64,000 bases of DNA from Anthoceros angustus (lineage: Eukaryota > Plantae > Anthocerotophyta), in the NCBI GenBank assembly GCA_010909165.1, contig MU008183.1, forward strand, positions 1 through 64,000, read 5' to 3'. Shown in pieces: positions 347 through 48,900 of this stretch (position 1 is its first letter; each line of letters starts with the position of its first letter). Below the pieces are notes generated by a model. That model was not told the origin of the DNA and searched no databases. It saw nothing but the letters and a program-made list of their open reading frames with translations. Made by a program: the position numbers and the translations under genes.

Positions 347-430
347 CACTAGTAGAATAAGTCATTTACAACGTCCATAACGTGCTTTACAACGCATGAG
401 GTTGTAAAGCACATTTTGGACGTTGTAATA
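347..430 (+). repeat. Left TIR and subterminal repeats of CACTA element A
   Basis: CACTA terminus followed by direct and inverted TTTACAACG / GTTGTAA motifs. Confidence 0.75.
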
Positions 431-520
431 TGTGCTCAAAAATATATCGTATTGGTATACGATATCCATATATGGTATACCATATCCGCATATGGTAATA
501 GACACATACATGCGGCAGCG

Positions 521-830
521 TGGGGCTCACCAAGCAAAGAAATTGGGCTCACCGTGAGGCTCGCCAAGCAGTGAATTGGGCTCGCTGTGAGGCTCTCCAA
601 GCAAGAAATTGGGCTCGCCGAGGCTCGCCAAGCAAAGAAATTGGGCTCACCGGGAGGCTCGCCAAGCAGTGAATTGGGCTCGCCGTGAGGCTCGCCAAGC
701 TGGGGATCAAGCTCGTTGTACAGTGGATTGGGCCGGGGTTCTTGGCGGGGCTCACCATGGGGCTTGCCAGGGATCGCTGTGGATTGGGCCAGATTTACGG
801 GGCTCGCCAAGCAAGGGATCGATCTCGTGG
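521..830. repeat. ~34-bp tandem repeat
   Basis: Repeated AATTGGGCTCGCCGTGAGGCTCGCCAAGCA units. Confidence 0.9.
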
Positions 831-949
831 ATCGGGCTCGGATTGCTAAGTAGGTGATCGGGATTGCGCTATCGCCTCGAAATCAAGCACCATGAAGGAG
901 AAAGGACTCGAATGAGTGAGTGGCCATTATCCTCTTAGGTCGACACAGT

Positions 950-1380
950 TGCCCAAGTCTTGATGGGAGTAGCAGCCCAATTCTTCCCAATTGCTATGTG
1001 CAACCAAGTCTCGATGGCAATAGCAGCATAATCCTCCCCAATTCTTTTCGAATTTGTGCTATGTGGAGCCAAGTCTCGATGGAAGTAGCACTCAATTCTT
1101 CCCAATTCTTTCCGAATTTGTGCTATGTGGAGTCAAGTCTCGATGGAAGTAGCACTCAATTCTTCCCAATTCTTTGGAATTTGTGCTATGTGCAACCAAG
1201 TCTCGATGGCAATAGCGACAATTCTCCCCAATTCTTTCTAGAATTTGTGCTATGTGCAACCAAGTCTCGATGGCAATAGCGACAATTCTCCCCAATTCTT
1301 CTGGAATTTGTGCTATGTGGAGTCAAGTCTCGATGCAAGTAGCACTCAATTCTTCCCAATTCTTTGGAATTTGTGCTATG
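950..1380. repeat. ~57-60-bp tandem repeat
   Basis: Repeated TTGTGCTATGTG..CAAGTCTCGATGG..TAGC..CAATTCT units, about 7 copies. Confidence 0.9.
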
Positions 1381-1428
1381 TGTGTGTCTGGATATAATTA
1401 GTCTAATATGTATGTGGTCATGTGCTAG

Positions 1429-1742
1429 GTTTTCTAGTGTGGGCGGCAAGGATTACACAATCCTGTTGGTCTCTTCGTTGTTTGCCACAAAATCCAGCAT
1501 TGGAAGGACACACTCTTGTGGGAGACTCATCATGCCGGAGGTGGCCGTGGCGTGCTCGACCAATGGTTCAAGATGCTTTTGAGAAATGTAATTGTGTAAA
1601 CTGTAAGGGCAAAGGACTATGCGGGGAATCAAGTCCGTATTCATGAGCGTACATACGGAATATATCGAGGCGGAGGGAGGCGCAAGTTCGGAAGAAACCC
1701 CGTACCAAGTGAAGACTCACCGTGACGGCAAGCGTATATGAC
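1429..1742 (+). pseudogene. Putative 5' coding exon with a transposase-associated CxCxxC...H zinc-binding motif
   Basis: Reads KCNCVNCKGK then, after one frameshift, TMRGNQVRIHERTYG. Flanked by AG (1427-1428) and a GTGAGT donor at 1743, followed by an AT-rich intron-like segment. Confidence 0.55.
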
Positions 1743-1974
1743 GTGAGTTTCTAACCCCTTTGGTTAAGTATTTGAGATGTATATTGAGTTTCTAACCACT
1801 ATTTCGTGATACATTCAAGGTATATCATATTTAATATTAATATATATATTTATATTTATTTAGTATATGCATGCTCCTTTTAAATGTGCATGATGTGTCA
1901 TTGATGCATGATGGTTTCGTAAGTTAAACTGGTATGGTATGTAGTTTGTACTTATGATGATTATTTTTGTATAG

Positions 1975-2896
1975 TTGGCGTAACTTCCTATAGAGGACCA
2001 TGTTAGCACTCTTGATCCCGATGATGCGATGATGAACGCACTGTGGACACATGTCTGCTGGGTAGGAAAAATTTGGGTGGAAAGGAGAGTCACGTGGACC
2101 TTTCCTTGAACACCCTTACCACGAGAGGAGAGGATGCAAACTCTCATGATGCTGTTGTGTTATACAAGCGTCTTCTCAAAGGTGTATATCCCAAGGAGTG
2201 GGGAATGTGGGAGGAGGGGGCCCTTCTTATTAACAAACCATTTCCATATTGGGGTTGTTGGTGGATAGTGAAGGAGGCAACAAATCCAATAATGGGGTTG
2301 GGTTTGTTTGCCTTGGAAAAAATAAGTGTTAGTCGTAGCCAAAGAAAGGCGTTCCATTATTTGTGTTTGGTGGTCCCATGTATACACAGTGAGTTTAACA
2401 AGATTGGAGTGTGAGATTGCGAGTTTCAAAATATGCCTTAACTTTCAACAGATGTAGGCGTAAGAAGCTTACGTCACCTATAGTGTACTTGGATGGGCAT
2501 GTGGCATATGGGAATGTGGCAGGTTACATTAATAGCAGTAAACAAGGTAACTGTCTCTGGGAGGAAAGAGACGATGGGCATGAGCTATTGCATCATAGCC
2601 ACATGATGTGGGTGTGCACTTGGGCAGTGCGGACCATTGAAGCAGGTGAGGAGTTGTTTGTTGAGTACAATTGGTTTGACCCAAATTATGCGATAGCAAG
2701 AATAAAGGCTGCAGAGCGTGAGTATGCACATACTAAAGAGTATGTGCAAAGAGAGTGGAAGAAGATGAAGGCAAAGTTAATGCATGAAGACAGGGGTGCG
2801 GATGCGGAGGAGTATGTAGATACTGCAGAATATGCAAAAAGGGAATGGGAAAAGATGAAGGCAAAGTTGATGAAAGAGGATGTAGATTTAGAGTAG
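1975..2896 (+). pseudogene. SET-domain protein (lysine methyltransferase-like), frameshifted
   Basis: ORFs 2043-2414 and 2411-2896 together give SET motifs in the expected order: MGLGLFALEKI, PLFVFGGPMY, YLDG, GNVAGYINSS..GNC, AVRTIEAGEELFVEYNW. A duplicated C-terminal helix follows (EY..REW.KMKAKLM.ED x2). Confidence 0.85.
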
Positions 2897-3087
2897 TATT
2901 TGCATGACACGTGCTGAATGATGTGAATATTAGTTTTTCCTTACTGTGTTTGAAGTTTGAACATAGTTTATCTAGGTGATTGATATCCTTTAGAGATCAT
3001 GGTCAAGCTAGCCCATAATCAAGTATTATATATTTTATTTTATTTTATTTTAATAACATGTTATGTATGTTTCCTCAAAAATTCTAG

Positions 3088-6000
3088 GTTGAAGGGGAAA
3101 AATTCATGGTGAATCCATGCATGAGGAAGAAAACGAATACATTCACCCTCATGAACAAGTGGCTATAGAGATGGTGGAGGCACTTGGTGGAGTAGCTGGT
3201 ATTGCCGACATGACTGAGGAAGAGGTAAATTCTTTGCCTAAGGAATTGAAGAGAATGCATACAGCAACCACATCTTTATGGACCGGAGCCAAAACAAATT
3301 TGTCATTTACCTTATTATTGCTTAACGTCCAGAGGAGGCATTGTTGGTCGGATGCATCTGTGAATACTATGTTGGAATTAATAGGGAGCTTAGGACTCCC
3401 CGCTGACAACAAGTTGCCCAAGAATAGAGCTGAGATAAGAAAACTATTGAAGGGATTTGGCCTGTCTTATAAATCTATACATGCTTGTCCAAATGACTGT
3501 CTATTATTTCATGGCGAGCTACAGCTCCTGCTAATGTGCTGCAAGTGTGGGGCAAATAGGTATAGAACGGATACAAAGGGCAAAAAAATACCTGTGAAGG
3601 TGTTGCGTTATTTCCCATTAATTCCTAGGTTGAAGCAAATGTTTAGGTGCAAGAAGCTAGCTAGTATGATGTCTTGGCATGCAACATTTAAGTCTAGTGA
3701 TGGGATCATGCGAATACCATCAGACAGCCAAGCGTGGGAATATGTGGACCAAACATTTCCAGAGTTTGCTATGGAGACGCGCAATATTCGATTTGGGCTT
3801 GCTACTGATGGGATTAACCCGTTTGGACACCAGAGTTCTCAATATTCCATTTGGCCAGTGCTACTTGTCAATTATAACTTGCCTCCATGGATGTCCATAC
3901 GCAATGGACATATATTATTATCAATGATTATTCCTGGTCCGAAGCAAGTGAAAATGCACATTTATTTCCGACCGCTTATTGAAGAGTTGAAGATATTGTG
4001 GGAAGAAGGCATAATAGTGGACGATATTTCTGCTGGAGATGGGAATGCTCAAAACAATTTAGATTAAAAGCCTTATTGATGTGGACTATGCGACTACCGT
4101 GATATACGGTCACTTCAAAGCTTCAAACCAAAGGGAAGCGGGCATGTCCAAAATGTTGGGATAAACTTGAAGCACACAGATCACCACACACTAAAAAAAT
4201 GACGTATGATAAAAATTCTAGAATGCACTTGCCAGAGGAACACATGTCTAGGGTGGAAGAGAAGGACACATTTGATGGACGTCGGATCGCAAGTGTTCTT
4301 CCGAGCGATGAACCTGAGCTTATCGTAGAGAGAGTTTTTACGAAAACCGCAACTAAGGCGATCATAGGCCTTGGGGTGTCACAAGCAATGAACCTTCAAT
4401 TTTTGGGAGCTTCCATATTGGGAGGTAGGTATCGATCCGTTTTTATCCTTCACTTTAATATATTATAAAATGATTATGCTTTTAGAACTTTGTAGCAATC
4501 GAATGCTTACAATTATCATCAATATGCATGTGATGGCTGCGGTGTTGCTAATTAGACACTTGTTTGATATCATTCACATTGGAAAGAACGTTAGTGAACA
4601 AATTATGAGGCACATTTGTGGGGAGTTTGAAACCCTTTCGAGTCGTAGAGATCTCGAACTATCAAATACCAAGCAGGAATGGTGGCCCAAGGACAGGCCC
4701 CAACCTAAACCCAAGCCCAAGGGTAGGGCTAGGGCCAGGGCCATGGGCCATGGCGCCAAGCCCCAAGCCAAGTATGGGCCTAGGCCTAGGCAATCAAGGA
4801 AAAGGAAGAGAGGACAAGATGATGCAGTTGATGAAGGAAACGCTCGGGAACGTGTGCATATACGGACTCCAGCACCTTGGGTTCTTGGACATGGCACTAA
4901 CTATTCTTATCCTAAAGCATTGGAGAAATTGAAGAGAAGGGTTTGCAACATCCGTATGCCCACTGGGTATGGGTCCAACTTGAAACGTTGTTTTAAGAAA
5001 GGGACACGAGAGACAATTTCAGGCCTGAAGTCCCATGATCATCATCATTTGTTATGTGACATATGGCCAATTGCCTTGAGAGGGTTGATACATCCACATG
5101 TGCATAAGGCTATATGTGATCTCGCAGAACTAATGCGTTGGCTTACCGCAAAAGAAATTGTGAAGGATGAGATTCCTGCTATGAAGGTCAAAATTGCGAG
5201 GTGATGTGCATTTTGGAGAGAGAGTTTCCTACAACATTTCGACAAGCCGGTCCATCGTTATTCATCCGTGCGGAGGTTGAATTATGTGGGCCCACACGCT
5301 ATCGTTGGATGTATTTTCTTGAACGACATATGAAAGTGCTAAAGAACCTTGTACGACAAAAAGCTCGACCGGAAGGAAGCATGGCTTTAGGATATCTAGC
5401 ACAAGAGACAATGTTTTACTCTTGAATTCTTTGGAAATATCCATAATGCAGCTCCACGGATGTGGACAATGAAAGAAGATGTTACTCAAAGTGGGGAGTT
5501 GTTACAAGGATATGGAAAGATAAAGCGTCTGTCAGATGTGGAAAGGAGTCAAGTGAGGAAAGTGATATTAGAGAACTCGGAGTGGACTAAGCAATGGAAA
5601 GAAGTATATGATGACAACGAAATCGAAGATCGCCTTTTGTGGAGTGGTTAACTGATGAGGTGGAAGCAGCATCTAAAAGGGGAACTGCATTAGAAATATA
5701 TGGAAAGGAGGTGGTTGCACTTGTAAGAGGGCCATTTGAATCTGTGCGTTCTTATAGCATGATGTGGGCATATGGACATCATATTCGGACGGCGGATCTT
5801 GATGCTGGGAAACAAACTTGTGATAGCATCATAACACAACTATATACATTTCTATGTATTGAAAAACAGGGTGACCCTGAACCCATTGCAGCGCAGCTTC
5901 CGTATGTTGGAACAGTGGAGAGGATTTATGAAGTTGATTTTGGAGTTACTACAAATATAAATGTGCTCAAGGTAAAGTGGTTCCACACCCCCTGGAATGA

Positions 6001-6202
6001 GGATAGGACAGGAGAGAAAAGAGATGACTCCACTGGTATGGTCATGTTGAATCCAAACAAAACGTTATCTCAAGAAAAGCTGAAAGACGAACCATTCGTT
6101 ATGGTATCTCCGAAATTGGAGCGAGCTTTTATGCAAAATACCCAAAAATCTTGGAAACTTGTAGTTGGTACAACGCCGTGGAAGACGTGTAGTAGAATGT
6201 GA
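3088..6202 (+). pseudogene. CACTA transposase (Tnp2/Transposase_21 core, then DUF4218- and DUF4216-like regions), several frameshifts
   Basis: IHACPNDCLLF, PVKVLRYFPLIPRLKQMF, NIRFGLATDGINPF, WPVLLVNYNLPPW, IPGPKQ, ELPYWE|VLLIRHLFDIIHIGKNV (intron ~4425-4541), GLKSHDHH, RWMYFLERHMKVLKNLVRQKARPEGSMA, KVKWF...DEPFVM. Confidence 0.95.
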
Positions 6203-6923
6203 CGATTTTGATGGAAGACATGTCCATGAAGTGCTGGAATACAAGGATGACATGGAAGACGAGGATATCGATAGAAGACACGAAGTGGAAGATGATCATG
6301 AGCATATCGATGGAACTAGATATGTAGTGGAAGATAACGATGAAATGGAAGATGAGGATATCGATGGAATATACGTTGTTGAAGATGACATGGAAGATGA
6401 AGATATTGATGGAAGACATGTAATCAAGACGTCGACATAGAAGATGAGGATATTGATGAAAGACATGTAGTCGAAGATGAAGATGACATGGAAGATGAAG
6501 ACGACGGAAGATGAAGAGGAAGATGATGGTGATAGTGATGATGAGGATGACAAGGAAGATGCGGATGATGAGGAAGACGAGGATGCAGGTAGAGAGGATA
6601 TCGATGAAGAGACTACGGAAGATGAGGAGGGTAGCGAAAATGAGAAGGACATGGAATCAGAAGACGAGGACACCAACAAGGAAGAAGAGGAAGATGAGGA
6701 CAACAAGGAAGAAGAGGAAGATGTGGACGAAAGGGAAGATGAAGAGGAAAGTAAAGATGAGGATGATAAGGAAGATGAGGATGAAAGCAAAGATGAGGAT
6801 GACAAGGAAGATGAGGATGAAAGCAAAGACGAGGATGACAAGGAAGATGAGGATGAAAGCAAAGATGAGGACGAAAGCGAAGATGAGGATGACAATAAAA
6901 AAGATGAGGACAACAGCGAATGA
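6165..6923 (+). CDS. Asp/Glu-rich repetitive C-terminal extension of the transposase region
   Basis: ORFs 6165-6440 and 6477-6923 are almost entirely D/E with internal repeats (KDEDDKEDEDES) and overlap the end of the DUF4216-like ORF. Confidence 0.5.
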
Positions 6924-7039
6924 GCTACGATAGATATCATCTTACGTACATCGATGAGGAATTGAGAATGAGCGATACGTCATGTATGCGGTGTTAGAAG
7001 GTTTTGAAATTTCAAAATGTGATACAATGCTTGGGGTTT

Positions 7040-9310
7040 GAGTTTGGTCTTAATTATAACATATACAAGGCTTGCTTATAATGTGTGAATTATTTTTACG
7101 ATGGTGCGGGACTCGAACCATGAGCCCCTTATAATCGAACATATATACTTCTAGTTCATTTCATCGTAATGCCTTTGTCATTAAAGTGTTGATCTAGTTT
7201 CCTCCGTACTTTTGCCAACGATAGTAGCATGTACATCCTCGACTATTCCACACGTCCACCTTTCTTTGGATAAACAAAGATAGTCAAACCAAACCAAACC
7301 CAACCCAAGCAAATATTAGCCTTCCTCGTAGCAAACATCCTTTCCCGAGATTCGAGCTGGCCTTATGAAAGAAAAGGGTACGTAGACGTGGGACAAGGAA
7401 ACAATGCAAAGACATACTTATCCTTGAAGTAATCTCCGCAGATATTCTGAGGCACCGGCCTAGAGCTTTCTGGCACATGCTCCTGCCCTTTGTTAGTAAG
7501 AAATGCAATGAGGGCATGAATTCCCTAGAAAAGTTTAATCACGAAGTAAATTCGGCCGGTGAGACGAGTGACTACTGCAGTATCCAAAATCTGGCCAAGG
7601 CTAACTAGACGATTAGCAAACTATATGAAGGCATTAGAACTTCATATGGCCCACAAAAGGCGGAACCACCATCTCCCCATCAAAATCTAAACCCCCAATC
7701 TATTCACTAATATATGCTGATTCAAATACCAGGCGAACATATGGGAACTCGAACGATACGATGAGGCGGACTCGAACTATGAGCCCCTTTTGAACATACT
7801 CCCAATTGATTTGTGCACCTTAAAATGCCTTTGTCATCAACATCTAATTTCTAATTGAGTACTTTTGCCAATGGTAGCAGCATGTAACTATGCCAAGCTA
7901 TAGCTTGTCTAGCCTTTCTCTGGACAAACAAAGATAATCAACTTTCCAAGATGAAACGTTAACCCCAACCTGTTTTAGTGAAAACCGCTCCCAAAATCAC
8001 CCCTTGTGCCCCAATCTATTCAATACCAATTGCAAGTAGCCTCCCTCGCATCAAACATCCCTTGTTGGCTCTCTATGCAAGGAAAAGGTAGCATCTCCTA
8101 GAAGAAACGAGCTCCAATATTGTGCAAGAGCTCAATCTTTCTTCGACAAATATGACTGATACAATGGCGGCGCCCGACAATGTCTTGCTATACAATGGCG
8201 CCGACAATGGCTTGCCATACAATGGCGCCTAATGCCCGAGAATGGCTTGCCATACAATGCCGTGCACGCCCAACAATAATGGCGCCCAATTAACACAACA
8301 ATGGCGCCTAACGCACAACAATAATGGTGCCCCAATTAACGCCCAACGCCAACAATGGCGTCCGCCCAACAATGGCACCCAATTAACGCCCAACAATGGC
8401 GCCCAATTAACGCCCAACAATGGTGCCCCAATGACAATGGCTGGCCATACAATGGTGCCCAAATAACGCCCAACAATAGCGCCAACAATAATGGCGCCCA
8501 ATGCTCAACTATGACGCTTAACGCCCAATAATGGCGCCCAATGCTCAACTATGACGCTACGCCCAATAATGGCGCCCAACGCCCAACAATAATGGGACCT
8601 AACGCTCAACTATGGCGCTCAATTAACGCCCAAAATTGCGCCCAATACAATATGCCAAATTTAAAATACCCTCTCTCCCGTCTTCCACCCCCATCAAAAC
8701 TCTTCCTCGTTATCCCCGCCCCACTTCCCTAAAGGAAAGAGTATGTAGTCGGAGAAAGCAACAATGCAAAGACATACTTATCCTTGAAGTAATCTTCGTA
8801 GATTTTCCGAGGAACCGTCTAGAGCTTTCAAACATGCTATACTCTTTGCTAGTAAGAAATGTAATGAGGGCATGAATTTTCTAGAGAAGTTTAATCACAA
8901 AGTAAATTCGGCCGGTGAGACGAGTGACTACAGCGATCCAATCTAGCCAAGGCTAACTAGATGATTAAAAGACTATATGGAAGCATTAGAACTTCATATG
9001 GCCCAAAAAGGCGAACCGCCACCTCCCCATCAAAATCTAAACCCCAATCTATTTACTAATATACACCGATTCAAATTTCCAAGACGCCGAACGTGTGGGA
9101 ACTCGAACATGTCGATGAGGCGGACTCGTACTATGAGTCCCTTTTGAACATACTCCCAATTGATTTGTACACCTTACAATGCCTTTGTCATTTGATCCAA
9201 TTTCCATGGGTACTTTTGCCAATGGTAGCAGCAAGTAACCATGCCAAGCTATAGCTTGTCTAGCCTTTCTCGATAAACAAAGATAATCAACCTTCCAAGA
9301 TGAAATGTTA
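7040..9310. repeat. Internally duplicated/triplicated module within element A
   Basis: ~7380-7960 matches ~8740-9310; ~7090-7280 matches ~7755-7940 and ~9110-9290 (GCCTTTGTCAT...TACTTTTGCCAA..GTAGCA...AAACAAAGATA). Confidence 0.85.
8155..8655. repeat. CAACAATGGCGCCCAATTAACGCC minisatellite, block 1
   Basis: Dense degenerate 12-24-bp repeats with a CAATGGCGCC core. Confidence 0.9.
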
Positions 9311-9334
9311 ACGTGCTTGCGACAAATATGATCG

Positions 9335-10175
9335 GCTATACAATGGTGCCAGGGCGTCAATGGCGTAACGCCCAACAATGGCTTGTCATTCAATGGTGCC
9401 CCAACGCCCAACAATAATGGCGCCCAATTAATGCCTAACTATGGCGCTCAATGGCTATCTGATACAATGGCGCCAACGCCATTCAAAGGTGTGCGCCAAC
9501 AATAATGGCGCCTAATTAATGCCTAACTATGGCACCGTCAATGGCTTGCCATACAATGGCGCCGCGACAATGGCTTGCTCGATGGTGCCAACGCCCAATA
9601 ATGGCGCCCAAATAACGCTAACAATGGCGCCAATGCCCAATTATGGCGCCCAACGCCAACAATGGCGCCGACAATGGCTGGCCATAGAATGGTGCCCAAA
9701 TAACACCCAATAATAATGGCGCCTAACGCACAACAATGGCGCCTAATGCCCGACAATGGCTGGCCATACAATGGTGCCCAAATAACGCCCAATAATAATG
9801 GTAACGCCCAACAATGGCGCCCAATTAATGCCCAACAATGGCGCTTAACGTCCAACAATGGCGCCTACGCCCAACAATGGCGCTTAACGTCCAACTATGG
9901 CGCCCAATTAACGCCTAACAATGGCGTCCAACACCCAACAATGGTACCAAATTAACGCAACAATGGCGCCCAATTAACGCCAACAATGGCGCCTATTAAT
10001 GCCCAACAATGGCGTCCTACTAACGCAATGGCGCCCAAGTAATGCCCAATAATGGCGCCCAATTAACGCCTAACAATGGCGCCCACGCGACAATGGTGCC
10101 CAACGCCCAACAATGGCACCCAATTAACGCTTCAATGGCGCCTAACGCCGACAATGGCTGGCCATACAATGGCCC
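9335..10175. repeat. CAACAATGGCGCC minisatellite, block 2
   Basis: Same core as block 1. Confidence 0.9.
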
Positions 10176-10469
10176 CTGCGAAAGGTAAGCATGTAACATG
10201 TACCATCAAGTGCGCGCCTTGTGGGCATAGAGGTGGTACCTGCTCACAATAAGAACACTAAAGAAAATGCTAAAGAGCGTGACGTACTAGTATTAGAGCA
10301 CTAGCGGCCCCCCTCTCAACTTTTTCCCTCTCCATGCCAGACTGTGTGTAAGGGCTGGGATTAATGGAGTGCGAGCTGCCGAGTGGCACGCCTCCGTACT
10401 CTTGAATGGACGCGTTCATCATGCCCCCACAAAATAACCCCAATCAAATTTAAAATAGCCCTCCCGCCT

Positions 10470-11371
10470 CACATTTTGAAGAAAAATGCTTTACAACGTA
10501 ATCTACAACAAGGGAATCACGTCATCAATCGCTGTTGTAAATGGCCTCCTATCATATTTTTTGTGATTAATAACAATAATAAAGAGTTTAAAAAAAATAA
10601 AGAACACATTTTGAGAAAATTACTTTACAACGTAATCTACAACAAGGGAGCCATGTCATCAATCGCTGTTGTAAATGGCCTCCTATCATATTTTTGTGAT
10701 TAATAATAATAATAAAGAGTTAAACAAATAAAGAACACATTTTGAGAAAAATGTTTTACAACGTAATCTACAACAAGGAGCCATGTCATCAATCGCTGTT
10801 GTAAATGGCCTCCAATCATATTTTTGTGATTAATAATAATAATAAAGAGTTTTGAAGAAATAAAGAACAAATTTTGAGAAAAAGGCTTTTACAACGTAAT
10901 CTACAACAAGGAGCCACGTCATCGCATGTTTGTAAATGGCTTCCAATCATATTTTTGTGGTTAATAATAATAACAAAGAGTTTTGAAGAAATAAAGAACA
11001 AATTTTGAGAAAAAGGCTTTTACAACGTAATCTACAACAAGGAGCCACGTCATCGCATCTTGTAAATGGCTTCCAATCATATTTTTGTGATTAGTGATGT
11101 TAATAAAGATTTTAGAAAATAAAGATCAAATTTTGAAAAAGCTTTTACAACGTAATCTACAACGTGGGAGCCACGTCATCAATCCGTTGTTGTAAATGAG
11201 CACCCAAAAGAGTGCCACATCATCCAACTAGAAACCCCCGTTGTAAACCGAGTCTTAAAACTTGCCACATCAGCGAAACTCAAACCAATTTACAACGGAG
11301 GTGTTTAGACGTTGTAAAGATTGGGGGATTTGCAAAAGGGGTTTTGTAAAACACCCCTCTCCCTAGTAGTG
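10470..11371. repeat. Right subterminal ~130-bp tandem array and right TIR of element A
   Basis: About 6 units of TTTACAACGTAATCTACAACAAGGAGCCA..TCATC..GTTGTAAATGGC, ending in TAGTAGTG. Confidence 0.9.
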
Positions 11372-19564: not shown

Positions 19565-20230
19565 CACTACTAGGAAAAGTGTACTTTTACCACGGACATT
19601 ACTACGGACTTTACAACGGGCATTACTACTCCCGTAGTAAAATGTCACTAGTAATCACATAGCGTTAGTGTCTGTGGTAAAGTCCAGTACATCGTATATG
19701 ATGGCTATACTCTGTATTCTATACGGAGTACGTATGGAGTATGTTAATAAAGTCTACCGTATACTAGTTACTCTTTAAATTACCAAACCTTTTACCACGG
19801 TATTTACTACATCAACAACCACGGACTTTACTCGGCCTAATCGTGGTTAAAAATAATGGTTAGTTAACGAGATTAGCTAACTACGGTATATTAACTTCAG
19901 TTAAATGAGTGGGTTTGGTTAATCATATGTTGACCATAGTTAATTAATCACGGTTAAGTAATCCGACACCGTTGTAAAATTCCATTGGATTCCTTGTAAA
20001 TCTCTCCGTTGTAGAAAAGATCTTCTAGTAATATTTTATAGTAAGTATTAAGTAGTAAAATCCTGTAGTAACAGCGTGGTTAACATATGTAGTAAAATTC
20101 TATAGTAAAAGTATGTTGTAAAATTCTATGGTAAAAGTCCGTAGTAAAATTCTATGGTAAAAAGTCCGTAGTAAAATTCTATAGTAAAAAGTTCGTAGTG
20201 AAATGTTTAGTAGTGGACTCTGTAGTAAAT
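19565..20230 (+). mobile_element. Orphan left end of a CACTA element (TIR plus subterminal repeats)
   Basis: CACTACTAGGAAAAG at 19565, followed by many TTTACTACGG / GTAGTAAAA repeats; no partner TIR was found. Confidence 0.7.
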
Positions 20231-24437: not shown

Positions 24438-26235
24438 CAACCCCGTCCTTCATGTCTGATCTCAAAGAAAAAGATAGGTTTAATGGCACGAAGTACCCAG
24501 TTTGGAGAGTGCGCATGAAAGCCATCTTGATTGCACGTGGTTGCTGGAGGGTTGTGGATGGTTCCTTTTCAAAACCAGATCCCAGCGGGTTCCTGGTGAC
24601 AAGGAAAGGTGGGCCGCCTGGCAACGGTTGCCGCAGCGATTCTTATCAATGGCTCCGCAGACTCGTCCCGATGTTGAGTGCACGACACGGGCATCCAACC
24701 GAATCAGCTCGAGAAGACGTATCAAGTCATTAACATTATGACTAAATGCGTTGTCTGGCAGGAGTATTACTCTCTACGAATGAAAGAAGGGGATAAGGTG
24801 GGCGTCTTTACCAGCAAATTCCGTCACCTCCGATCACAGCTTGCCTCCTTCAACATCAAGATTGAGGAGGAGCATGCCGTGGTTCAGTTGCTGAGCAGCT
24901 TGCCAGCTACTCTTTCAACAATTTGTCAGCTCCTATAATGGACCACTGAACGCCTCCCAAGCTGCTGCTGCCGCCGGAATTGCAAGTACGCTGACAGTTG
25001 ATGACATTGTCGCTGCCCTCCATCAGGAGGAACAGAGCAGGCTGTTCTCTATTAGTGGATCCAAGCCCAAGGCCGAAAAGGTCTTGGCGGCTCAGTTCAA
25101 GCCAAACAAACAGAAAGGCAAACCATAGTGGGTCTGGGCAATCTTCTCTTACAAAGAAATCTGGAAATTGCAACTGGTGCGGAATCCATGGACACTGGGC
25201 TCGAGGCATCGTAAGAAGGCGAACCCGGAAGAAGGCTTCCACGGTGTTTGTGGGGACAAGGGCTCGAATGAAAATTCGACATCTGCAGGCTGACAGCAAA
25301 GGAACAGTTAGAATATACACAATTTGCCTCTCTAATTCAAAGCACAATAGGGACAGTTGGTACTTGGATTGGGTGCAAGCGCCCACATACTAAGGGCAAT
25401 TTGTTCTCGTACAGATACCTCTCACCTTCTTTGAAAGGTGTTGCTTGGAGCGAGAAAAAGAGGCGAGCCTTCACATTGAAGGCGGGGGTAAATGCACCTT
25501 CATCTTACATATGGCCCGACTTGGTTTTGGAAGATGTTCTGTATGTGCCGAGGATGGCCAAGAATCTTGTGTCCTTGAGTCGTTTGCTTAGCATGAGAGC
25601 ATATAGTATGTTTGCAGACAAGAGTTCCTGTTCTTTCTATACCACTGCTGTTCCACACAGACTAGTGTTTAGAGGCATTCCAGACGGTGACCTGTACCGC
25701 CTAGATATCCATTGTCAGCCTGCACCTGTTACATTCTCAACAACTCCAGGTCAGATGGACTCCAAATTTTTAGCTTCTCTTTGGCATGCCAGGCTTGGTC
25801 ACGCCAACAGGGCTAAGCTAATCGATATGTCAGCTACGGACTGCTATAGAGAGCCTTTACCACAGTGCTTCAAGGATTTGCCTATTTGTGAGGCTTGTAT
25901 CTTGGCGAAGCAGAAGGAGCAGCCATTTCCCACCACCCCAGCACACAGAGCCAGTCACGTCCTTGAGTTAATACATGCGGATATCTTAGGAAAAATCCAC
26001 GAGCCATCACTAGGAGGTTCTCGATATTACCTTTCCCTTACAGATGACTTCAGTCGCTATTCCTGGACCTTCCCCATGCAGCTCAAGAGTGACACTTTTC
26101 ATTTGTTCAAGGAATGGCTCCCTGTGGTGCAACGCCAGACATGACAGGTGGTTAAATGGCTCCGCACGGACAATGGCACTGAATTTGTGAATGCCCAGTT
26201 TGATTCTTATCTGCAGGAGCATGGAATTCGGCGAT

Positions 26236-26943: not shown

Positions 26944-27690
26944 NNNNNNNNNNNNNNNNNNNNNNNNNNNNNNNNNNNNNNNNNNNNNNNNNNNNNNNNN
27001 NNNNNNNNNNNNNNNNNNNNNNNNNNNNNNNNNNNNNNNNNNNNNNNNNNNNNNNNNNNNNNNNNNNNNNNNNNNNNNNNNNNNNNNNNNNNNNNNNNNN
27101 NNNNNNNNNNNNNNNNNNNNNNNNNNNNNNNNNNNNNNNNNNNNNNNNNNNNNNNNNNNNNNNNNNNNNNNNNNNNNNNNNNNNNNNNNNNNNNNNNNNN
27201 NNNNNNNNNNNNNNNNNNNNNNNNNNNNNNNNNNNNNNNNNNNNNNNNNNNNNNNNNNNNNNNNNNNNNNNNNNNNNNNNNNNNNNNNNNNNNNNNNNNN
27301 NNNNNNNNNNNNNNNNNNNNNNNNNNNNNNNNNNNNNNNNNNNNNNNNNNNNNNNNNNNNNNNNNNNNNNNNNNNNNNNNNNNNNNNNNNNNNNNNNNNN
27401 NNNNNNNNNNNNNNNNNNNNNNNNNNNNNNNNNNNNNNNNNNNNNNNNNNNNNNNNNNNNNNNNNNNNNNNNNNNNNNNNNNNNNNNNNNNNNNNNNNNN
27501 NNNNNNNNNNNNNNNNNNNNNNNNNNNNNNNNNNNNNNNNNNNNNNNNNNNNNNNNNNNNNNNNNNNNNNNNNNNNNNNNNNNNNNNNNNNNNNNNNNNN
27601 NNNNNNNNNNNNNNNNNNNNNNNNNNNNNNNNNNNNNNNNNNNNNNNNNNNNNNNNNNNNNNNNNNNNNNNNNNNNNNNNNNNNNNNNNN
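26944..27690. other. Assembly gap (N run)
   Basis: 747 consecutive N. Confidence 1.
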
Positions 27691-40350: not shown

Positions 40351-41159
40351 AAGGGGATCGGATCACATCGACGTGATCGAAACACGCGGAGGAGACGTGT
40401 AGCCGCTAACCCAAGGCGAACAGAGGCATGAGACAGCGGCCAGGCGGCATAAGAGAAGGAGGCCAGCAATGGAGATGGAGGATCTCGGGGCTCGATTCGT
40501 GAAGTGGAGAAACAATGACGAGATGGAAGACCGCAAGGAGACCTTGGAGCTACACCTGCCGCGTCGTGCCAGGAGGGAGCTCACGTTTCTTGGCCGGCTC
40601 TGAGCTTCCCGCATCAGCAGTGTCAGCGGGTCCCTTGCGAGCAACAGGGGAGGCAGTTGTCCTAGCCGCCTTGCTTGCTGCAAAGCGGCCTAGGTTGTCT
40701 CTTGCTAGCTGGCGGGGGTTCGCATCCTCAGAGGAGGATGACATCTCGATCAGGTTACGCTCTACAACCTCTTCTCCAATTGCACACAGCGTGAAGAGGA
40801 AGAAGAGGAGTATAGCGCACCTGGTGGGGACTGGTTTCTCACTGGCACGCTCGAATATATAAAAGCCAGGAGTTAGCGAACGCACCGAACGCAATGCATC
40901 TGCAGCTTTCACCCGACTCCATCCTACAAGGACTGGAGATGATCCAGTCGCTGGAGCATCACTTTCAAAAATGATCAACAAGTGGGGGTGAAGAGATATA
41001 CACTACTAGAAACATGGTGCCCATGTTACGGGTTTTTGACACAATTCTTGATACGGCCCTCTAGAACGTTACATTGTTGCTACGTGCTTTGCATACAAAC
41101 TGCATTTGTTACACTCAGATAACACTATTCCCTTCGGCGGGTGCATTGTGTTCCTATTA

Positions 41160-42999: not shown

Positions 43000-45260
43000 T
43001 GCGCCGTGGTGTCTGTAATGGCCGACATGTCCTACCGGAAGTAAGCCTCGCCTCGTTTCCATGGCGCAGCGCGAGATGGCGGAGCAAAGGCATCGGGCTG
43101 AGAAAACCGCAACATCGGATTCGCGATCACCACACCGCCTCTTCCTCCAAAGATATGGAAGAAACGACGCCGGAATTGTGGAACACTTACCACCGGAGCC
43201 GCACTCGATATCGCCTCTCGCAGGATGGTGGTTGTCTGCCATCAGCGTAAGCACATTTAGTACCGCACATTTCCCGACGGGCATGAGTTTTCGCCATAAA
43301 GCACTTGCTTGCTTGGAGAGTTCACAACGCGCCCTCACGCCGATCGCCATCATACTCACCATCGCCACTTCATTCTCACCGCCTCGCGCGACACGGGAAA
43401 GAAGCACGCCATTGCGCCTCGCGACGAAGCCGCCTTGTCAACGCGCACAATGGTCCGACGATCCGGAGTTCACAACGCATATACCGCCCATGCCCAGTTG
43501 TGCAGAAGCAAATTCCGACATTTCGCTGACCGCCAAAGAACAATCCGGTCTTGGTTCCGCGAGGTGTGTACTTGATGTTTTTACAGCTCTTTCGTGGATG
43601 CGAACGATGATCCGCTCGACCCCCTCATGCCCGCATTGAGTTCCCGCAGCCGATGCCCATTCTCATGAAGTTGGCAATGGCCACCCGCCTCGCACTGTAC
43701 GATATTCCGGCGGTGCCACACGCCGCCCGCCCACCGCAAATGCGAGTGTGTGAACTCGACCACACGGGCGGATACAGCAGCCAATGCCGGACGGTGTATG
43801 GTTGTGAGAGGACATGCTGCGACCTTGATGCGACGCTAGGTGGACACCGATGCGACGCGCCGCGACCATGACGCTGCGCGACGCGACCTTCATGCCGACG
43901 GAGGAGATTCTGTGGACTTGGATGAACTATTGGCCGGTGTTCCCGACGTCGCAAGGAGAGAGCATATGCCCGGATGCTGGAAATGCCCTTGTTCACCATC
44001 GCAACCTTGCACCTCGAAGAGTCCCGCTTAATCGCAACCGCTCTTGCTTTCCATTCAAACTCGTTATGGCATACCGACGTCGATGTCGATGCAGTGTTGT
44101 TGGGCTGCATTTGTTGCCCGAGAGGAATTCTCCGCCCAAGTCGACGGAGGCTAAAAAGACATTGTACTCTTCGGGCCGCACTTCAAGAAAATTCATGCTC
44201 GTAAATGATCGCATGTCGCTTCGGGCCCCTATGCGCGGACCACGCGAATGCATTAAATGCTCGCAGACAGATATGTCGAGGGCGTGGATCGCCAAACGGC
44301 GCTAGGAGAGCTCCTGTGAAAGTTCTGGCACTTTCCAAGGATAGGCCCGCATGTTTAGAGCACCGCATAATCGCAAGGCTAATGACAACACATGGATCTG
44401 GAGCACGATGGGTCCATGGGCATAATGGTGACAACCGCATGGGAGGTTTTAGATGGATTGGATGGCTTTGGCTCGGAACCCGTAAACATCCGTCTCGCTT
44501 GCAACGGACGGTTTAACCCATTTGGACACAAGTCCACAACTACATCTATATGGCTGTTATGCTATTCTTACACAACCTTCCACCATGGCTAAGCACGAAC
44601 CGCTTATACCATCATGCATTGTGCGGGCCCTCACATTGTGCCGAACTTTGATGTTTACATGGAACCTCTTTTGGAGGAGTTGAGAGACCTGGCATGGGAT
44701 ACCCATGGACGACTTTCCCCCGACAGCCGACGGCGCTTCACGCTATGAGTGCTTTGCACACCATAGCCGATTATCCGCATTGGCACACTCCACGGCTTTC
44801 GTGTGAAGGGTTCAAGGGCATGCGAATGTTGGGATGGCTTAGACTCGCTGGGCCCACCACGCGCGTAAGGAGGAGTACCTTGGCTCGGCGGTGGCTTCCC
44901 AATCATCCCATGCGCGGTAGACATGGACCGGTACAACAATGAAGTGGAGCGGCCTCGTCCCAATCCCCTCGACGCTTAATGGCGTATATGGAAAAGAGAG
45001 ATAATGCAACAACCGGAGTTGAGGGAGAGGCAAGTTTGGCACCGCCGCAAAAGCTTATGGTTTGATTACCGCCGTATTGGAGACACATGCTGAGGTGGAC
45101 ACAAAGGGATGTTATGCACATTAAGAAGAACAATGCAAAGGCTTTGTGGCAGACCTTCATAGGAGAGAAAGATGATCTACGATCCCGTTTAGACATGGAA
45201 GAATACGGGGGCAAGCATGAGCTATGGCCATTGCTAGGCAATAGGGAGATGTCATGACAC
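43000..45260 (+). pseudogene. Degenerate, 3'-truncated CACTA Tnp2 transposase (copy B1)
   Basis: LLPERNSPPKS, ECIKCS, APVKVL, NIRLA..GFNPFGHKS, HNLPPW, DVYMEPLLEEL, PYWRHML...DVMHIKKN. Confidence 0.8.
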
Positions 45261-45639
45261 CCTGGTGTTGTGTTCGGTGAAGGGGTATGTGGGTGCATGC
45301 ATGTGCGTGAATATGGTATGTATGTCCGCTTATGGACATGCATGCATGGTGGGAATGAATGATGGATGTGCATGCGATGCTGAACATGCACTACAACAAA
45401 AAGCTTGGATTTATGACGGGCTTGTAATGACGGGTTTCTAGTTGCCACACTATTGGGCCTTAAAAACGACGGCGCGGCTGATATATGACGGTTTGGTGTG
45501 TATGTCATTGTGCTTGAATGACGGAGAGCCAGCCCGTCTTTTTCCATGTCATACTCTCGCTGTCCTATGCCATTGTTGGCCCCAACAGGTCCGGAAGAGC
45601 TTGCGGTTACCAGCTCCACCGGTTCGGATGCTCACGGCG

Positions 45640-45755
45640 CATTCCCATCCCACTCCCACCCTGCCCCCCATCCGACGCATTCCCATCCCACTCCCACCCT
45701 GCGCCCCATCCGACGCATTCCCATCCCACTCCCACCCTGCCCCCCATCCGTCCAT
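45640..45755. repeat. ~38-bp tandem repeat, 3 copies
   Basis: GCATTCCCATCCCACTCCCACCCTGCCCCCATCCGAC units. Confidence 0.9.
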
Positions 45756-45979
45756 GCCGTGGCATTTGGATAGCCAATAAGTCACGGCATCGCCTTGAGG
45801 TTTGTCGACATCTTTGGTGAAGTTTGGTTGAGCGGCACTCCAGGTGTCGTTCATGAGCAATAAAATAAGGCGGCCTTGATTGGATTCACGACCCACGTGT
45901 CCGACTTCTGGATAAAGCGGTGTCACGGTCCTTGGCCATCGTCAGCCATTGGCCGCCCTCCTTTTCCGCACATCAATGG

Positions 45980-48900
45980 ATGCTCCACGCAACAACGCGG
46001 ATCCCAAGGATTCTCTCATTGCGCTTGCGACACCAGCGCATCCGGCGGAACGCCAGCCCGCTCGAGCGCTCTTGGCGCGGCTTCTTCCGAGATCGTTTTC
46101 CTTTTCACCTACAGTACGCCGCACCACCCTGGCGATGGAGCCTACCAGCGTATTTTCTTCTTTGGCGGGGCTCGGCGGCGAGGCCATATCGATGAGGAGG
46201 AATTGGACCTTCCCAACCCGGAGCCGGCGCGATTCCAGGCGAGGCAAGCCATTCATCGGGGCCAAGACTGCGGCGCGCATTGCCGCCATCCCTTTGAGTC
46301 GACTTTCCAATGGTTCATGACCAGATATGGCCCACGAACACATGGCCAACACCCAAAAGGAATTGAGAGAGGCGATGGGGGGTGCCGCGTGTGACAATCT
46401 ACGAGGCCTGCGCATGTGGACGATCGAAGAGCCCGAACGTTCTTCACACACACGGTATCGGGGTTACGGCATTGCGGCCATCGGGACGGTTGATCTCCGA
46501 CGCGGGCATTACTGCTATTTTCAGCCTCTTGGCGTCGGACTTCCTCCCCAAGTGCAACACACTCCCCCGCTCCAGGTCGGAAGTCAAATCAATGCTCCTA
46601 CACGTAGGTCAGAAATGCATCCGCATTGATGCCTGTGTAGGTGACTGCATCCTGTTTTGGGGGCCCCGCTCGGAAGAAACCGTCTGCGAGTTCTGCGAGG
46701 AGCCCAGGTTCCGGGCTGGTGCAACAGGCCAGCCGATTCCGCGGAAAACGATGTTTTACTTCCCAATTGCCGATCGGCTAAGACGGATGTTTGCATGCGC
46801 ATCCACCGCGGGGCAACTCACATGGTGGAAAAAGCACCGCAGCACAGATGGTCTGCTACGTATAATGAGCGACACCCCCGCTTGGAGACAATTGGATGCA
46901 GTGGACGGATTCGGAGAGGAGGGCCGATGAATATTCAATTTGAGCTTGGCGCTTGGCGGCTTCAACCCCAGTGGCCATCGTTCATCGGCTTATACCATAT
47001 GGCCGGTTCTTCTCCTCATCCATAACCTGCCTCCATGGGTAGCCACCAAACGCCAACGTATCCTCATGCCCATCATTATTCCTGGCCCGAAGCAAGTGAA
47101 GAACATGGATGTATATATGGCCCCCCATGCCGAGGCTGGGAGTTGTGGATAGGTGTTCGGCGGTGACCTTTCCAAACCGCTGGATGACCCAGCTCATTTG
47201 TTCACCCTCCGAGCTGCCATTCTGCATGCAACTTGACTACCGGGGAGCACTATTTGGGCTAAGGGCACGGGCTACCAGGTGCATTGATTGTGGGCACCCG
47301 CTTAGGCCCCAGCTGGTCCAATGCTCTTGACAAAGTTGTTGTCCGAGGTCACCGGCGAAATTGAAATGACCATGGAGGATAGAGCACATTGAGTTCTTCA
47401 ACAACCTTCCGGAGCGACGCCCACCTCCGCTTCCAACAAAATTGCAGGTGATATAGCAAAGACAGATGGAAGCATGGGTGAACGCCACCGTTGGAGAGGA
47501 CTACCTGGCTGTGTGAAGCGAGTCCGCCATCCTTTCCACCCTGCCATACTTGCTCTGCATTCCGAAACTGTGGATTAAAGATGTTATGCATACGGAGGTG
47601 AACAACTGCCAGGCGTTTTGGAAAGTATGGACGGGGTTATGGGACACACACAACGCACGAATCGACCTTATGGATTTGGACTCCAAACCCTGGTTGTGGC
47701 TTGTGTGGGATGACAATGGCGAAGCACACCTTCCAGATGCTTCCTACAGTTTGAGCAAACCAGACATACACTGTGTGAAAGATGAGCTTTGTGCCATTAA
47801 ACCCCCAACCGCTTTCGGGTCCAATATCAGCACGTGTTTTCGTGGGGACAAGGTAACGGGCCTCAAGAGCCACGATTGGCACTTGCTCATGCAGTATTAC
47901 TTTCCTATTGCCTTGCGACACCGATTGAAAGGCCCGGAGTATGATACATTCATTCAACTCAGCAGCATTTACCGCTGGATTTGCCAAAAGGCAATCAACC
48001 CGACTGAGATTCCAGCGATGCGTGCGAAAGCAATTTCCACTCTTATTTCTCTGGAGCGTTATTACCCTTCGGTGATATGGAATCCTATGCAGCATTTGGT
48101 AATCCACCTCATCGACGAGGTGGAGACTCACGCACTGCGCACGCTCGTTGGATGTTTCCTGCTGAGCGTCACCTTAATGTACTGAAACAATCCATCCGCC
48201 AGCGCGCAAGGCCAGAGGGGAGCATGGCGACTGGCTTCCTAGCAAGGGAGAGCATGTTCTACTCCTCCCGCTACCTGGCTGCCAGAAACCCAGGAAAGGC
48301 TCATCTTTTCCAGCAAACACCGCAAGACCGCACAGTTGAGCGCCCCATCGGCAAGGGAAAGCCTAAAAGCCACCGCTACCGGCTCAAACGGTTGCATCGC
48401 ATTTCTGCCGCAGCAATTGGAGGTGTCCGCAACAAGCCATTCTAAACAGTATTCGCCAAAGAACTTTAGGGATGGCTCAAAAGTGCGGTGCGGGATGGCC
48501 GCTGGAGCCACCTGCCGGAGTTCGATGATATTAGGGCTTTGGTGAACGGCCCAAGACAAAGAGTAATGTCCTTCCGAGGGTTGGAGACTATGGGCTATCA
48601 TTTCCGAACAGTGGAAGGAGATGCAAACCGAAAGGTTTCCCAGGACAGTTGGGTATTTGGAACTTTTGATATGGAAGATCAACCGGTCCAATTTTATGGT
48701 AGACTGTTTGAAATCCTGGATGTTGCCTTCGAAGGTGGCGGAGTCAAAGCCTTCATCTTCGTCGTCAACTGGTTCAATTGTGCAACTACGGGCAGGCAGA
48801 TTTCTATGCATCCAGACATCAGCGGCTTCACAGCAGTGGATTCAAAGCAGCTTTACCGCTACCGGAGAGACCATATGACAGGCCCGTATACTTTCCCAAG

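Follow-up and report, generated by a model that had tools for sequence, protein, structure and literature searches.

A SET-domain exon in the first intron of a CACTA transposase gene of non-flowering plants and its predicted splicing from a shared zinc-finger exon

Elements in which one gene yields a transposase and a second protein include maize En/Spm and Arabidopsis ENSPM3/7, in which TnpA and TnpD are made via alternative splicing; among En/Spm elements generally, either alternative splicing or a split into separate genes accounts for the two proteins, and TnpA acts against silencing (PMC13547354; bioRxiv 10.64898/2026.08.24.746577). TnpA-like domains have been reported in flowering plants only (PMC13547354). 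SET genes are also carried by DNA transposons, as conserved accessory genes of HarbingerS and MuDR elements of Phytophthora and of Helitrons (cited in PMC12730594 and bioRxiv 10.1101/2025.02.11.637652); these belong to other superfamilies and hosts than the element described below, their accessory genes are separate, and the portions of these sources available to us report no shared exon. Plavaka elements of red algae, which belong to the En/Spm superfamily, have a SET domain in the accessory gene PAG2; there, as far as can be compared by description, it is fused to an adenine DNA methylase and belongs to a cassette of three genes separate from the transposase (bioRxiv 10.1101/2025.02.11.637652). 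In the literature examined, transposon-borne SET genes are listed in several superfamilies without a tested function. SETMAR (Metnase) is a domesticated host fusion protein in which a SET domain lies next to a transposase. SET-carrying transposons and En/Spm alternative splicing are thus each known, and we found no report of their combination, that is, of a SET exon nested in an intron of a land-plant CACTA transposase gene (most subscription journals and Repbase lay outside the scope of this search).

The locus studied here lies in a 64,000-nt stretch of Anthoceros angustus DNA, referred to as the window, and is an old, dead copy, a pseudogene, of a plant CACTA (En/Spm) transposon of the cut-and-paste type. 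The element spans 11 kb (347-11371) between inverted CACTA termini that agree at 8/9 terminal bases. Its left end (347-428, plus strand) consists of the CACTAGTAG terminus and subterminal TTTACAAC repeats, and its right end (10470-11371) of 131-bp subterminal tandem repeats with TTTACAAC followed by the CTAGTAGTG terminus; the subterminal motif, TTTACAAC/GTTGTAAA, is in opposite orientation at the two ends, with 3 copies on the left and 13 on the right. The flanks, gct and cat, show no 3-bp target site duplication, which an old or recombined copy would account for. Tandem arrays of 33 bp and 64 bp (519-1382) presumably represent the promoter or 5' untranslated region. On the plus strand there follow a cysteine-rich exon, a SET region, and a broken TnpD-type DDE transposase (Transposase_21, DUF4218). 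Neither a TnpA-like frame nor any other long extra frame was found in the element, and its right half contains a 600-bp internal duplication (7368-7963 and 8731-9312, 86% identical) alternating with ACAATGGCGCC-type repeat arrays. The resemblance to En/Spm and ENSPM3/7 therefore lies in a CACTA element with one gene for transposase and accessory protein, the alternative splicing being, in our case, predicted. The accessory protein of those elements is the DNA-binding beta-barrel TnpA, coded downstream of or around TnpD, whereas that of the window-type element is a SET domain, coded upstream in the first intron, which would take the transposase's own finger.

A sequence-only reading of the window had proposed that a single zinc-finger exon could be joined by alternative splicing to either of two exons, SET or transposase, and the splice signals on which it relied were verified in the sequence: a GTGAGT donor at 1743, TTTTTGTATAG ending at 1974, and TTCTAG ending at 3087. 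Each ranks first among the local candidates by a splice score that ignores the reading frame, is hand-weighted, and was written after most loci had been read. The gene would then comprise, all on the plus strand, the zinc-finger exon (1429-1742, with an uncertain 5' edge), an intron from the shared donor to the proximal acceptor (1743-1974), the SET exon with its own stop at the end (1975-2896), a spacer up to the distal acceptor (2897-3087), and the transposase body (3088-6933). Both noncoding segments were rightly described as A+T-rich, at 72% each against 50-59% in the flanking exons; the spacer contains neither a finger motif nor a canonical AATAAA. The two junctions also read as had been claimed, with 1742/1975 giving SVYD-LA-stop-LP and 1742/3088 reaching the transposase frame with a 1-nt indel.

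The damage to the window copy proved greater than that reading allowed. The zinc-finger exon has its cysteines (1587-1604), its His codon (1642), and its donor, but in the frame that yields SVYD two stops follow the cysteines before the donor is reached, and the finger histidine lies in another frame. From the third Cys to the His there are 37 nt, compared with the family spacing of 13 residues (39 nt), which places a frameshift, a 2-nt deletion, near 1620. The proposed exon start at 1429 is a candidate acceptor, but ranks only second by splice score, and the likely, though still candidate, start codon is the ATG at 1563. The SET domain itself is real (Pfam PF00856, E of 2.5e-6, above the cut-off; family profile, E of 7e-21 and 1.5e-8, one per half), but instead of a single TAA the exon has frameshifts between about 2030 and 2120 and near 2347, in addition to stops. 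The first frame after 1974 matches a W-x-H-V-C motif of the closest relative (p of 0.014 for that frame, three frames having been tried). The exon ends in a C-terminal helical tail made of two imperfect copies of a charged repeat (2675-2896), longer than the tails of relatives. The transposase carries several frameshifts and stops across Transposase_21 (ORF 3117-4067; E of 4e-43), DUF4218 (5201-5422), a C-terminal region, and an Asp/Glu-rich low-complexity tail made of 18-bp repeats (6296-6940), and its closest database matches, at about 50% identity, are from the fern Adiantum and from environmental assemblies. Since frameshifts affect exon 1, SET, and transposase alike, splice phase is unreadable from the window copy, which is itself able to make neither protein.

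Relatives with unbroken exons supply the missing phase. A direct homolog search with the window SET piece gave no match, and a SET profile search returned 74 proteins and further loci. A transposase match (P0024) led to a locus of the sequenced liverwort Calypogeia fissa (L001) with all three exons open, which forms a near-identical pair of copies with L014. Finger, SET, and transposase occur together on a single contig in six families (L001/L014, L005, L008, L015, L024, and L027/L028), and transposase cores are 46-65% identical across SET-bearing families (L005 being too short to measure). In a quick tree, from which L005 was likewise excluded and in which Adiantum was labelled SET-less without DNA of its locus, the SET-bearing families are spread over three or more deep transposase lineages and interspersed with SET-less ones, a pattern that would fit one gain of SET with losses and several gains alike. 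The SET closest to that of the window belongs to another contig (L003, 1125-2570), on which the finger exon is present and only an acceptor-like site, with no transposase, lies downstream.

The core of the finger, C-x-C-x2-C-x13-H (x14 in a few), is of the PF13963 (transposase-associated domain) type, split by the frameshift in the window; homologous finger exons match PF13963 with E of 3e-5 to 0.025, all below the curated cut-off. The same core forms the N-terminus of 48/120 transposase matches. In a SET-less Calypogeia element (L030) finger and transposase share one continuous, intronless frame, and in another SET-less element (L007) they are joined via a short phase-0 intron. Judged by this homology, the finger is an ordinary N-terminal domain of SET-less CACTA transposases, and, since SET-bearing elements have no finger other than that preceding SET, the SET exon lies inside the first intron of the transposase gene. 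Between families, synonymous sites are saturated and pN amounts to about 0.26-0.42 in each of exon 1, SET, and transposase, which indicates that SET has been kept by selection and has diverged along with the element. On these comparative signals, the nesting of the SET exon is a real, old, and selected arrangement. The view that it is a neutral host gene fragment recently captured in the intron, for which one could cite the gene pieces picked up by CACTA elements (known for soybean, cited in PMC4158355) and the broken state of the window copy, is largely refuted by this purifying selection, and the same SET family, open and identically placed in three or more deep transposase lineages, makes it extremely improbable.

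The phases found in the relatives agree with alternative splicing from one donor. The best donor after the finger, chosen blind to frame, is in phase 0 in 11/11 loci (9 families, one of them SET-less), the SET exon is terminated by a stop in all six SET-bearing families, and in 6/6 families the top-scoring transposase acceptor lies in frame; the corresponding chance, (1/3)^6 or about 0.001 if the families are independent, is optimistic because they share ancestry. Two loci deviate: in the sister copy L014 the in-frame transposase acceptor is only second by score, and the SET acceptor of L005 was not picked up by the score, although the SET frame of this locus opens at a TAG. Across the related families all three sites are in phase 0, and splice phases compatible with both products are conserved. 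An independent NCBI gene model of Calypogeia, P0152, has the finger exon spliced to SET exactly as predicted. No finger joined to SET from a spliced contig occurs among the 390 proteins fetched, and no spliced finger-SET or finger-transposase contig was found from any SET-bearing family. A further contig (L004) begins exactly at a predicted SET acceptor, a possible branch point, an observation to which we attach no weight.

From the order and homology of the exons, the phases of the splice sites, the stop codons, and the purifying selection, which are genomic signals only, we consider it likely that the finger exon is shared and alternatively spliced to SET or to the transposase, and this is our best reading; the idea of one exon with two acceptors is supported by the relatives, and both junctions remain predictions. 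We propose that a CACTA (En/Spm) lineage of non-flowering plants carries a SET exon within the phase-0 first intron of its transposase gene and that a single transcript would start in the left end of the element. Splicing of the finger exon to the near acceptor would give a zinc-finger-SET protein of about 270-390 aa, stopping at the end of the SET exon, and splicing to the far acceptor, skipping SET, would give the normal zinc-finger-transposase. The gene structure thereby predicts two products with a common N-terminus. The near splice may be the commoner one, limiting transposase output. The SET product may be an active lysine methyltransferase serving the element, most likely by countering silencing or by modifying the transposition complex, which it could join via the shared N-terminus.

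Whether the SET product would act as an enzyme was judged from its fold and motifs. The model folds as a SET domain (pLDDT of 86), with SET8 and MLL matches at E of about 1e-7. SET8, MLL1, and Legionella LegAS4/RomA, the best structural and profile matches, share the fold, but identity is only about 20%, no subfamily is clear, and the window-type SET has neither a pre-SET nor a post-SET domain. The nearest Atlas cluster of the SET family is from Streptophyta. Across 47 sequences there is almost no variation in the GxG cofactor motif, the motif-III asparagine, or the C-terminal tyrosine, all of which are present in the window pieces too. Activity as a lysine methyltransferase is plausible on these grounds, and we lean toward it. 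An alternative that overlaps with our favored explanation as regards splicing is that the SET product is a nonenzyme, a dead decoy or brake, with the near acceptor drawing off transcripts and the short finger product poisoning or tuning the assembly of the transposase. The histidine of the NH(S/C) motif is indeed replaced in every member (0/45 complete members retain it), no post-SET cysteine cluster occurs in the family, and the product would have the N-terminus of the transposase. Set against this are the near invariance of the three motifs just described, selection on SET equal in strength to that on the transposase, and the example of LegAS4, which is described as an active H3K14 methyltransferase although it lacks the NH histidine. 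A dead decoy seems to us rather unlikely.

A second alternative holds that there are two separate genes, a finger-SET gene that took the old first exon and a transposase gene that lacks the finger and starts independently, within the spacer or downstream of it. The NCBI models of Calypogeia show two genes, one for finger-SET and the other for a transposase lacking the finger, in L008 an ATG is the first codon of the transposase exon, and some Arabidopsis En/Spm families split TnpA and TnpD into tandem genes (PMC13547354). However, SET-less relatives begin their transposase with the finger, and the spacer from the SET stop to the transposase acceptor is short and intron-like (111-298 nt in the six families, without a finger). 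The transposase frame opens exactly at the TAG of the acceptor in 4/6 families, and the stretch from the acceptor to the first in-frame ATG, 161 codons in total, has no stop (P of 4e-4). Upstream of that ATG a D-G/E-x-V-x-R stretch is kept in three families, and out-of-frame ATGs occur in 4 families. Since the frame is open and partly conserved before the first ATG, entry by splicing fits better than a new start, and we give the two-gene arrangement a low probability. One point against the shared-exon reading is that no conserved poly(A) signal was detected in the relatives downstream of the SET stop.

The third alternative is that the SET exon is internal, with a donor just before its stop, and that the product is a finger-SET-transposase fusion, a plant parallel of SETMAR. 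All acceptors are in phase 0, as this would require, and L001, L005, and L015 have a phase-0 GT after the last SET motif and ahead of the stop, with weak ones in the window. L006, L008, L024, and L027 have none, and the lack of a usable donor after the last SET motif in these 4/7 families excludes a three-part fusion as a family-wide arrangement. The stop is retained in every family, and no long two-domain protein was present among those fetched, in searches limited by length. Nor is there one frame joining SET and transposase as in SETMAR, the SET stop being present in all loci; the two cases are alike in that SET adjoins a transposase and differ in that the window-type SET exon ends in a stop and is borne by a mobile element. 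The fusion is, in our judgment, very unlikely.

Returning to alternative splicing from the shared finger exon, a more ambitious version is that the element writes its own chromatin marks: one promoter would supply both a transposase and an active histone methyltransferase, the shared finger would recruit the enzyme to element DNA or to the transposition complex, and the choice of acceptor would balance jumping against self-marking, making the system a non-flowering-plant counterpart of TnpA. Taken as a whole, this version is tentative and, we think, improbable. The sequence-only reading had suggested that the finger may target SET to the element; the structure model of the finger is poor (pTM of 0.42), and a fold search with it gave no structural match (best Z of 3.3), which leaves DNA targeting as speculation, and a role in protein assembly is as likely. 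The predicted gene structure and the liverwort copy pair with unbroken exons make two questions testable, (i) whether transposons can bring along a histone-modifying enzyme of their own to counter silencing, and (ii) what the role is of the widespread, uncharacterized transposase finger (PF13963).

Several further features of the window and of related contigs were recorded. A small CACTA-ended element (19565-20215, about 650 bp), which contains TTTACAAC motifs as well as tandem repeats of 13 bp and 27 bp, is probably nonautonomous and has no clear target duplication at its flanks. Two decayed CACTA transposase remnants lie at 44400-48800 and a CACTA end at 41001; neither a SET nor a finger motif was detected near the remnants. 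An assembly gap of N (26944-27690) adjoins a copia-like pol fragment (25401-26144). In two related elements, minus-strand genes stand head to head with the transposase (L015, 1155-5637, and L007, 8001-8765), one of them with DUF8039; no counterpart was found in the window element. Two long frames of related elements (412 and 457 aa) gave no Pfam match. Finally, one SET-bearing contig (L002) contains no C outside CG and CHG contexts (97/97), and so comes from a bisulfite-type library; this SET copy is CG- and CHG-methylated in its host.
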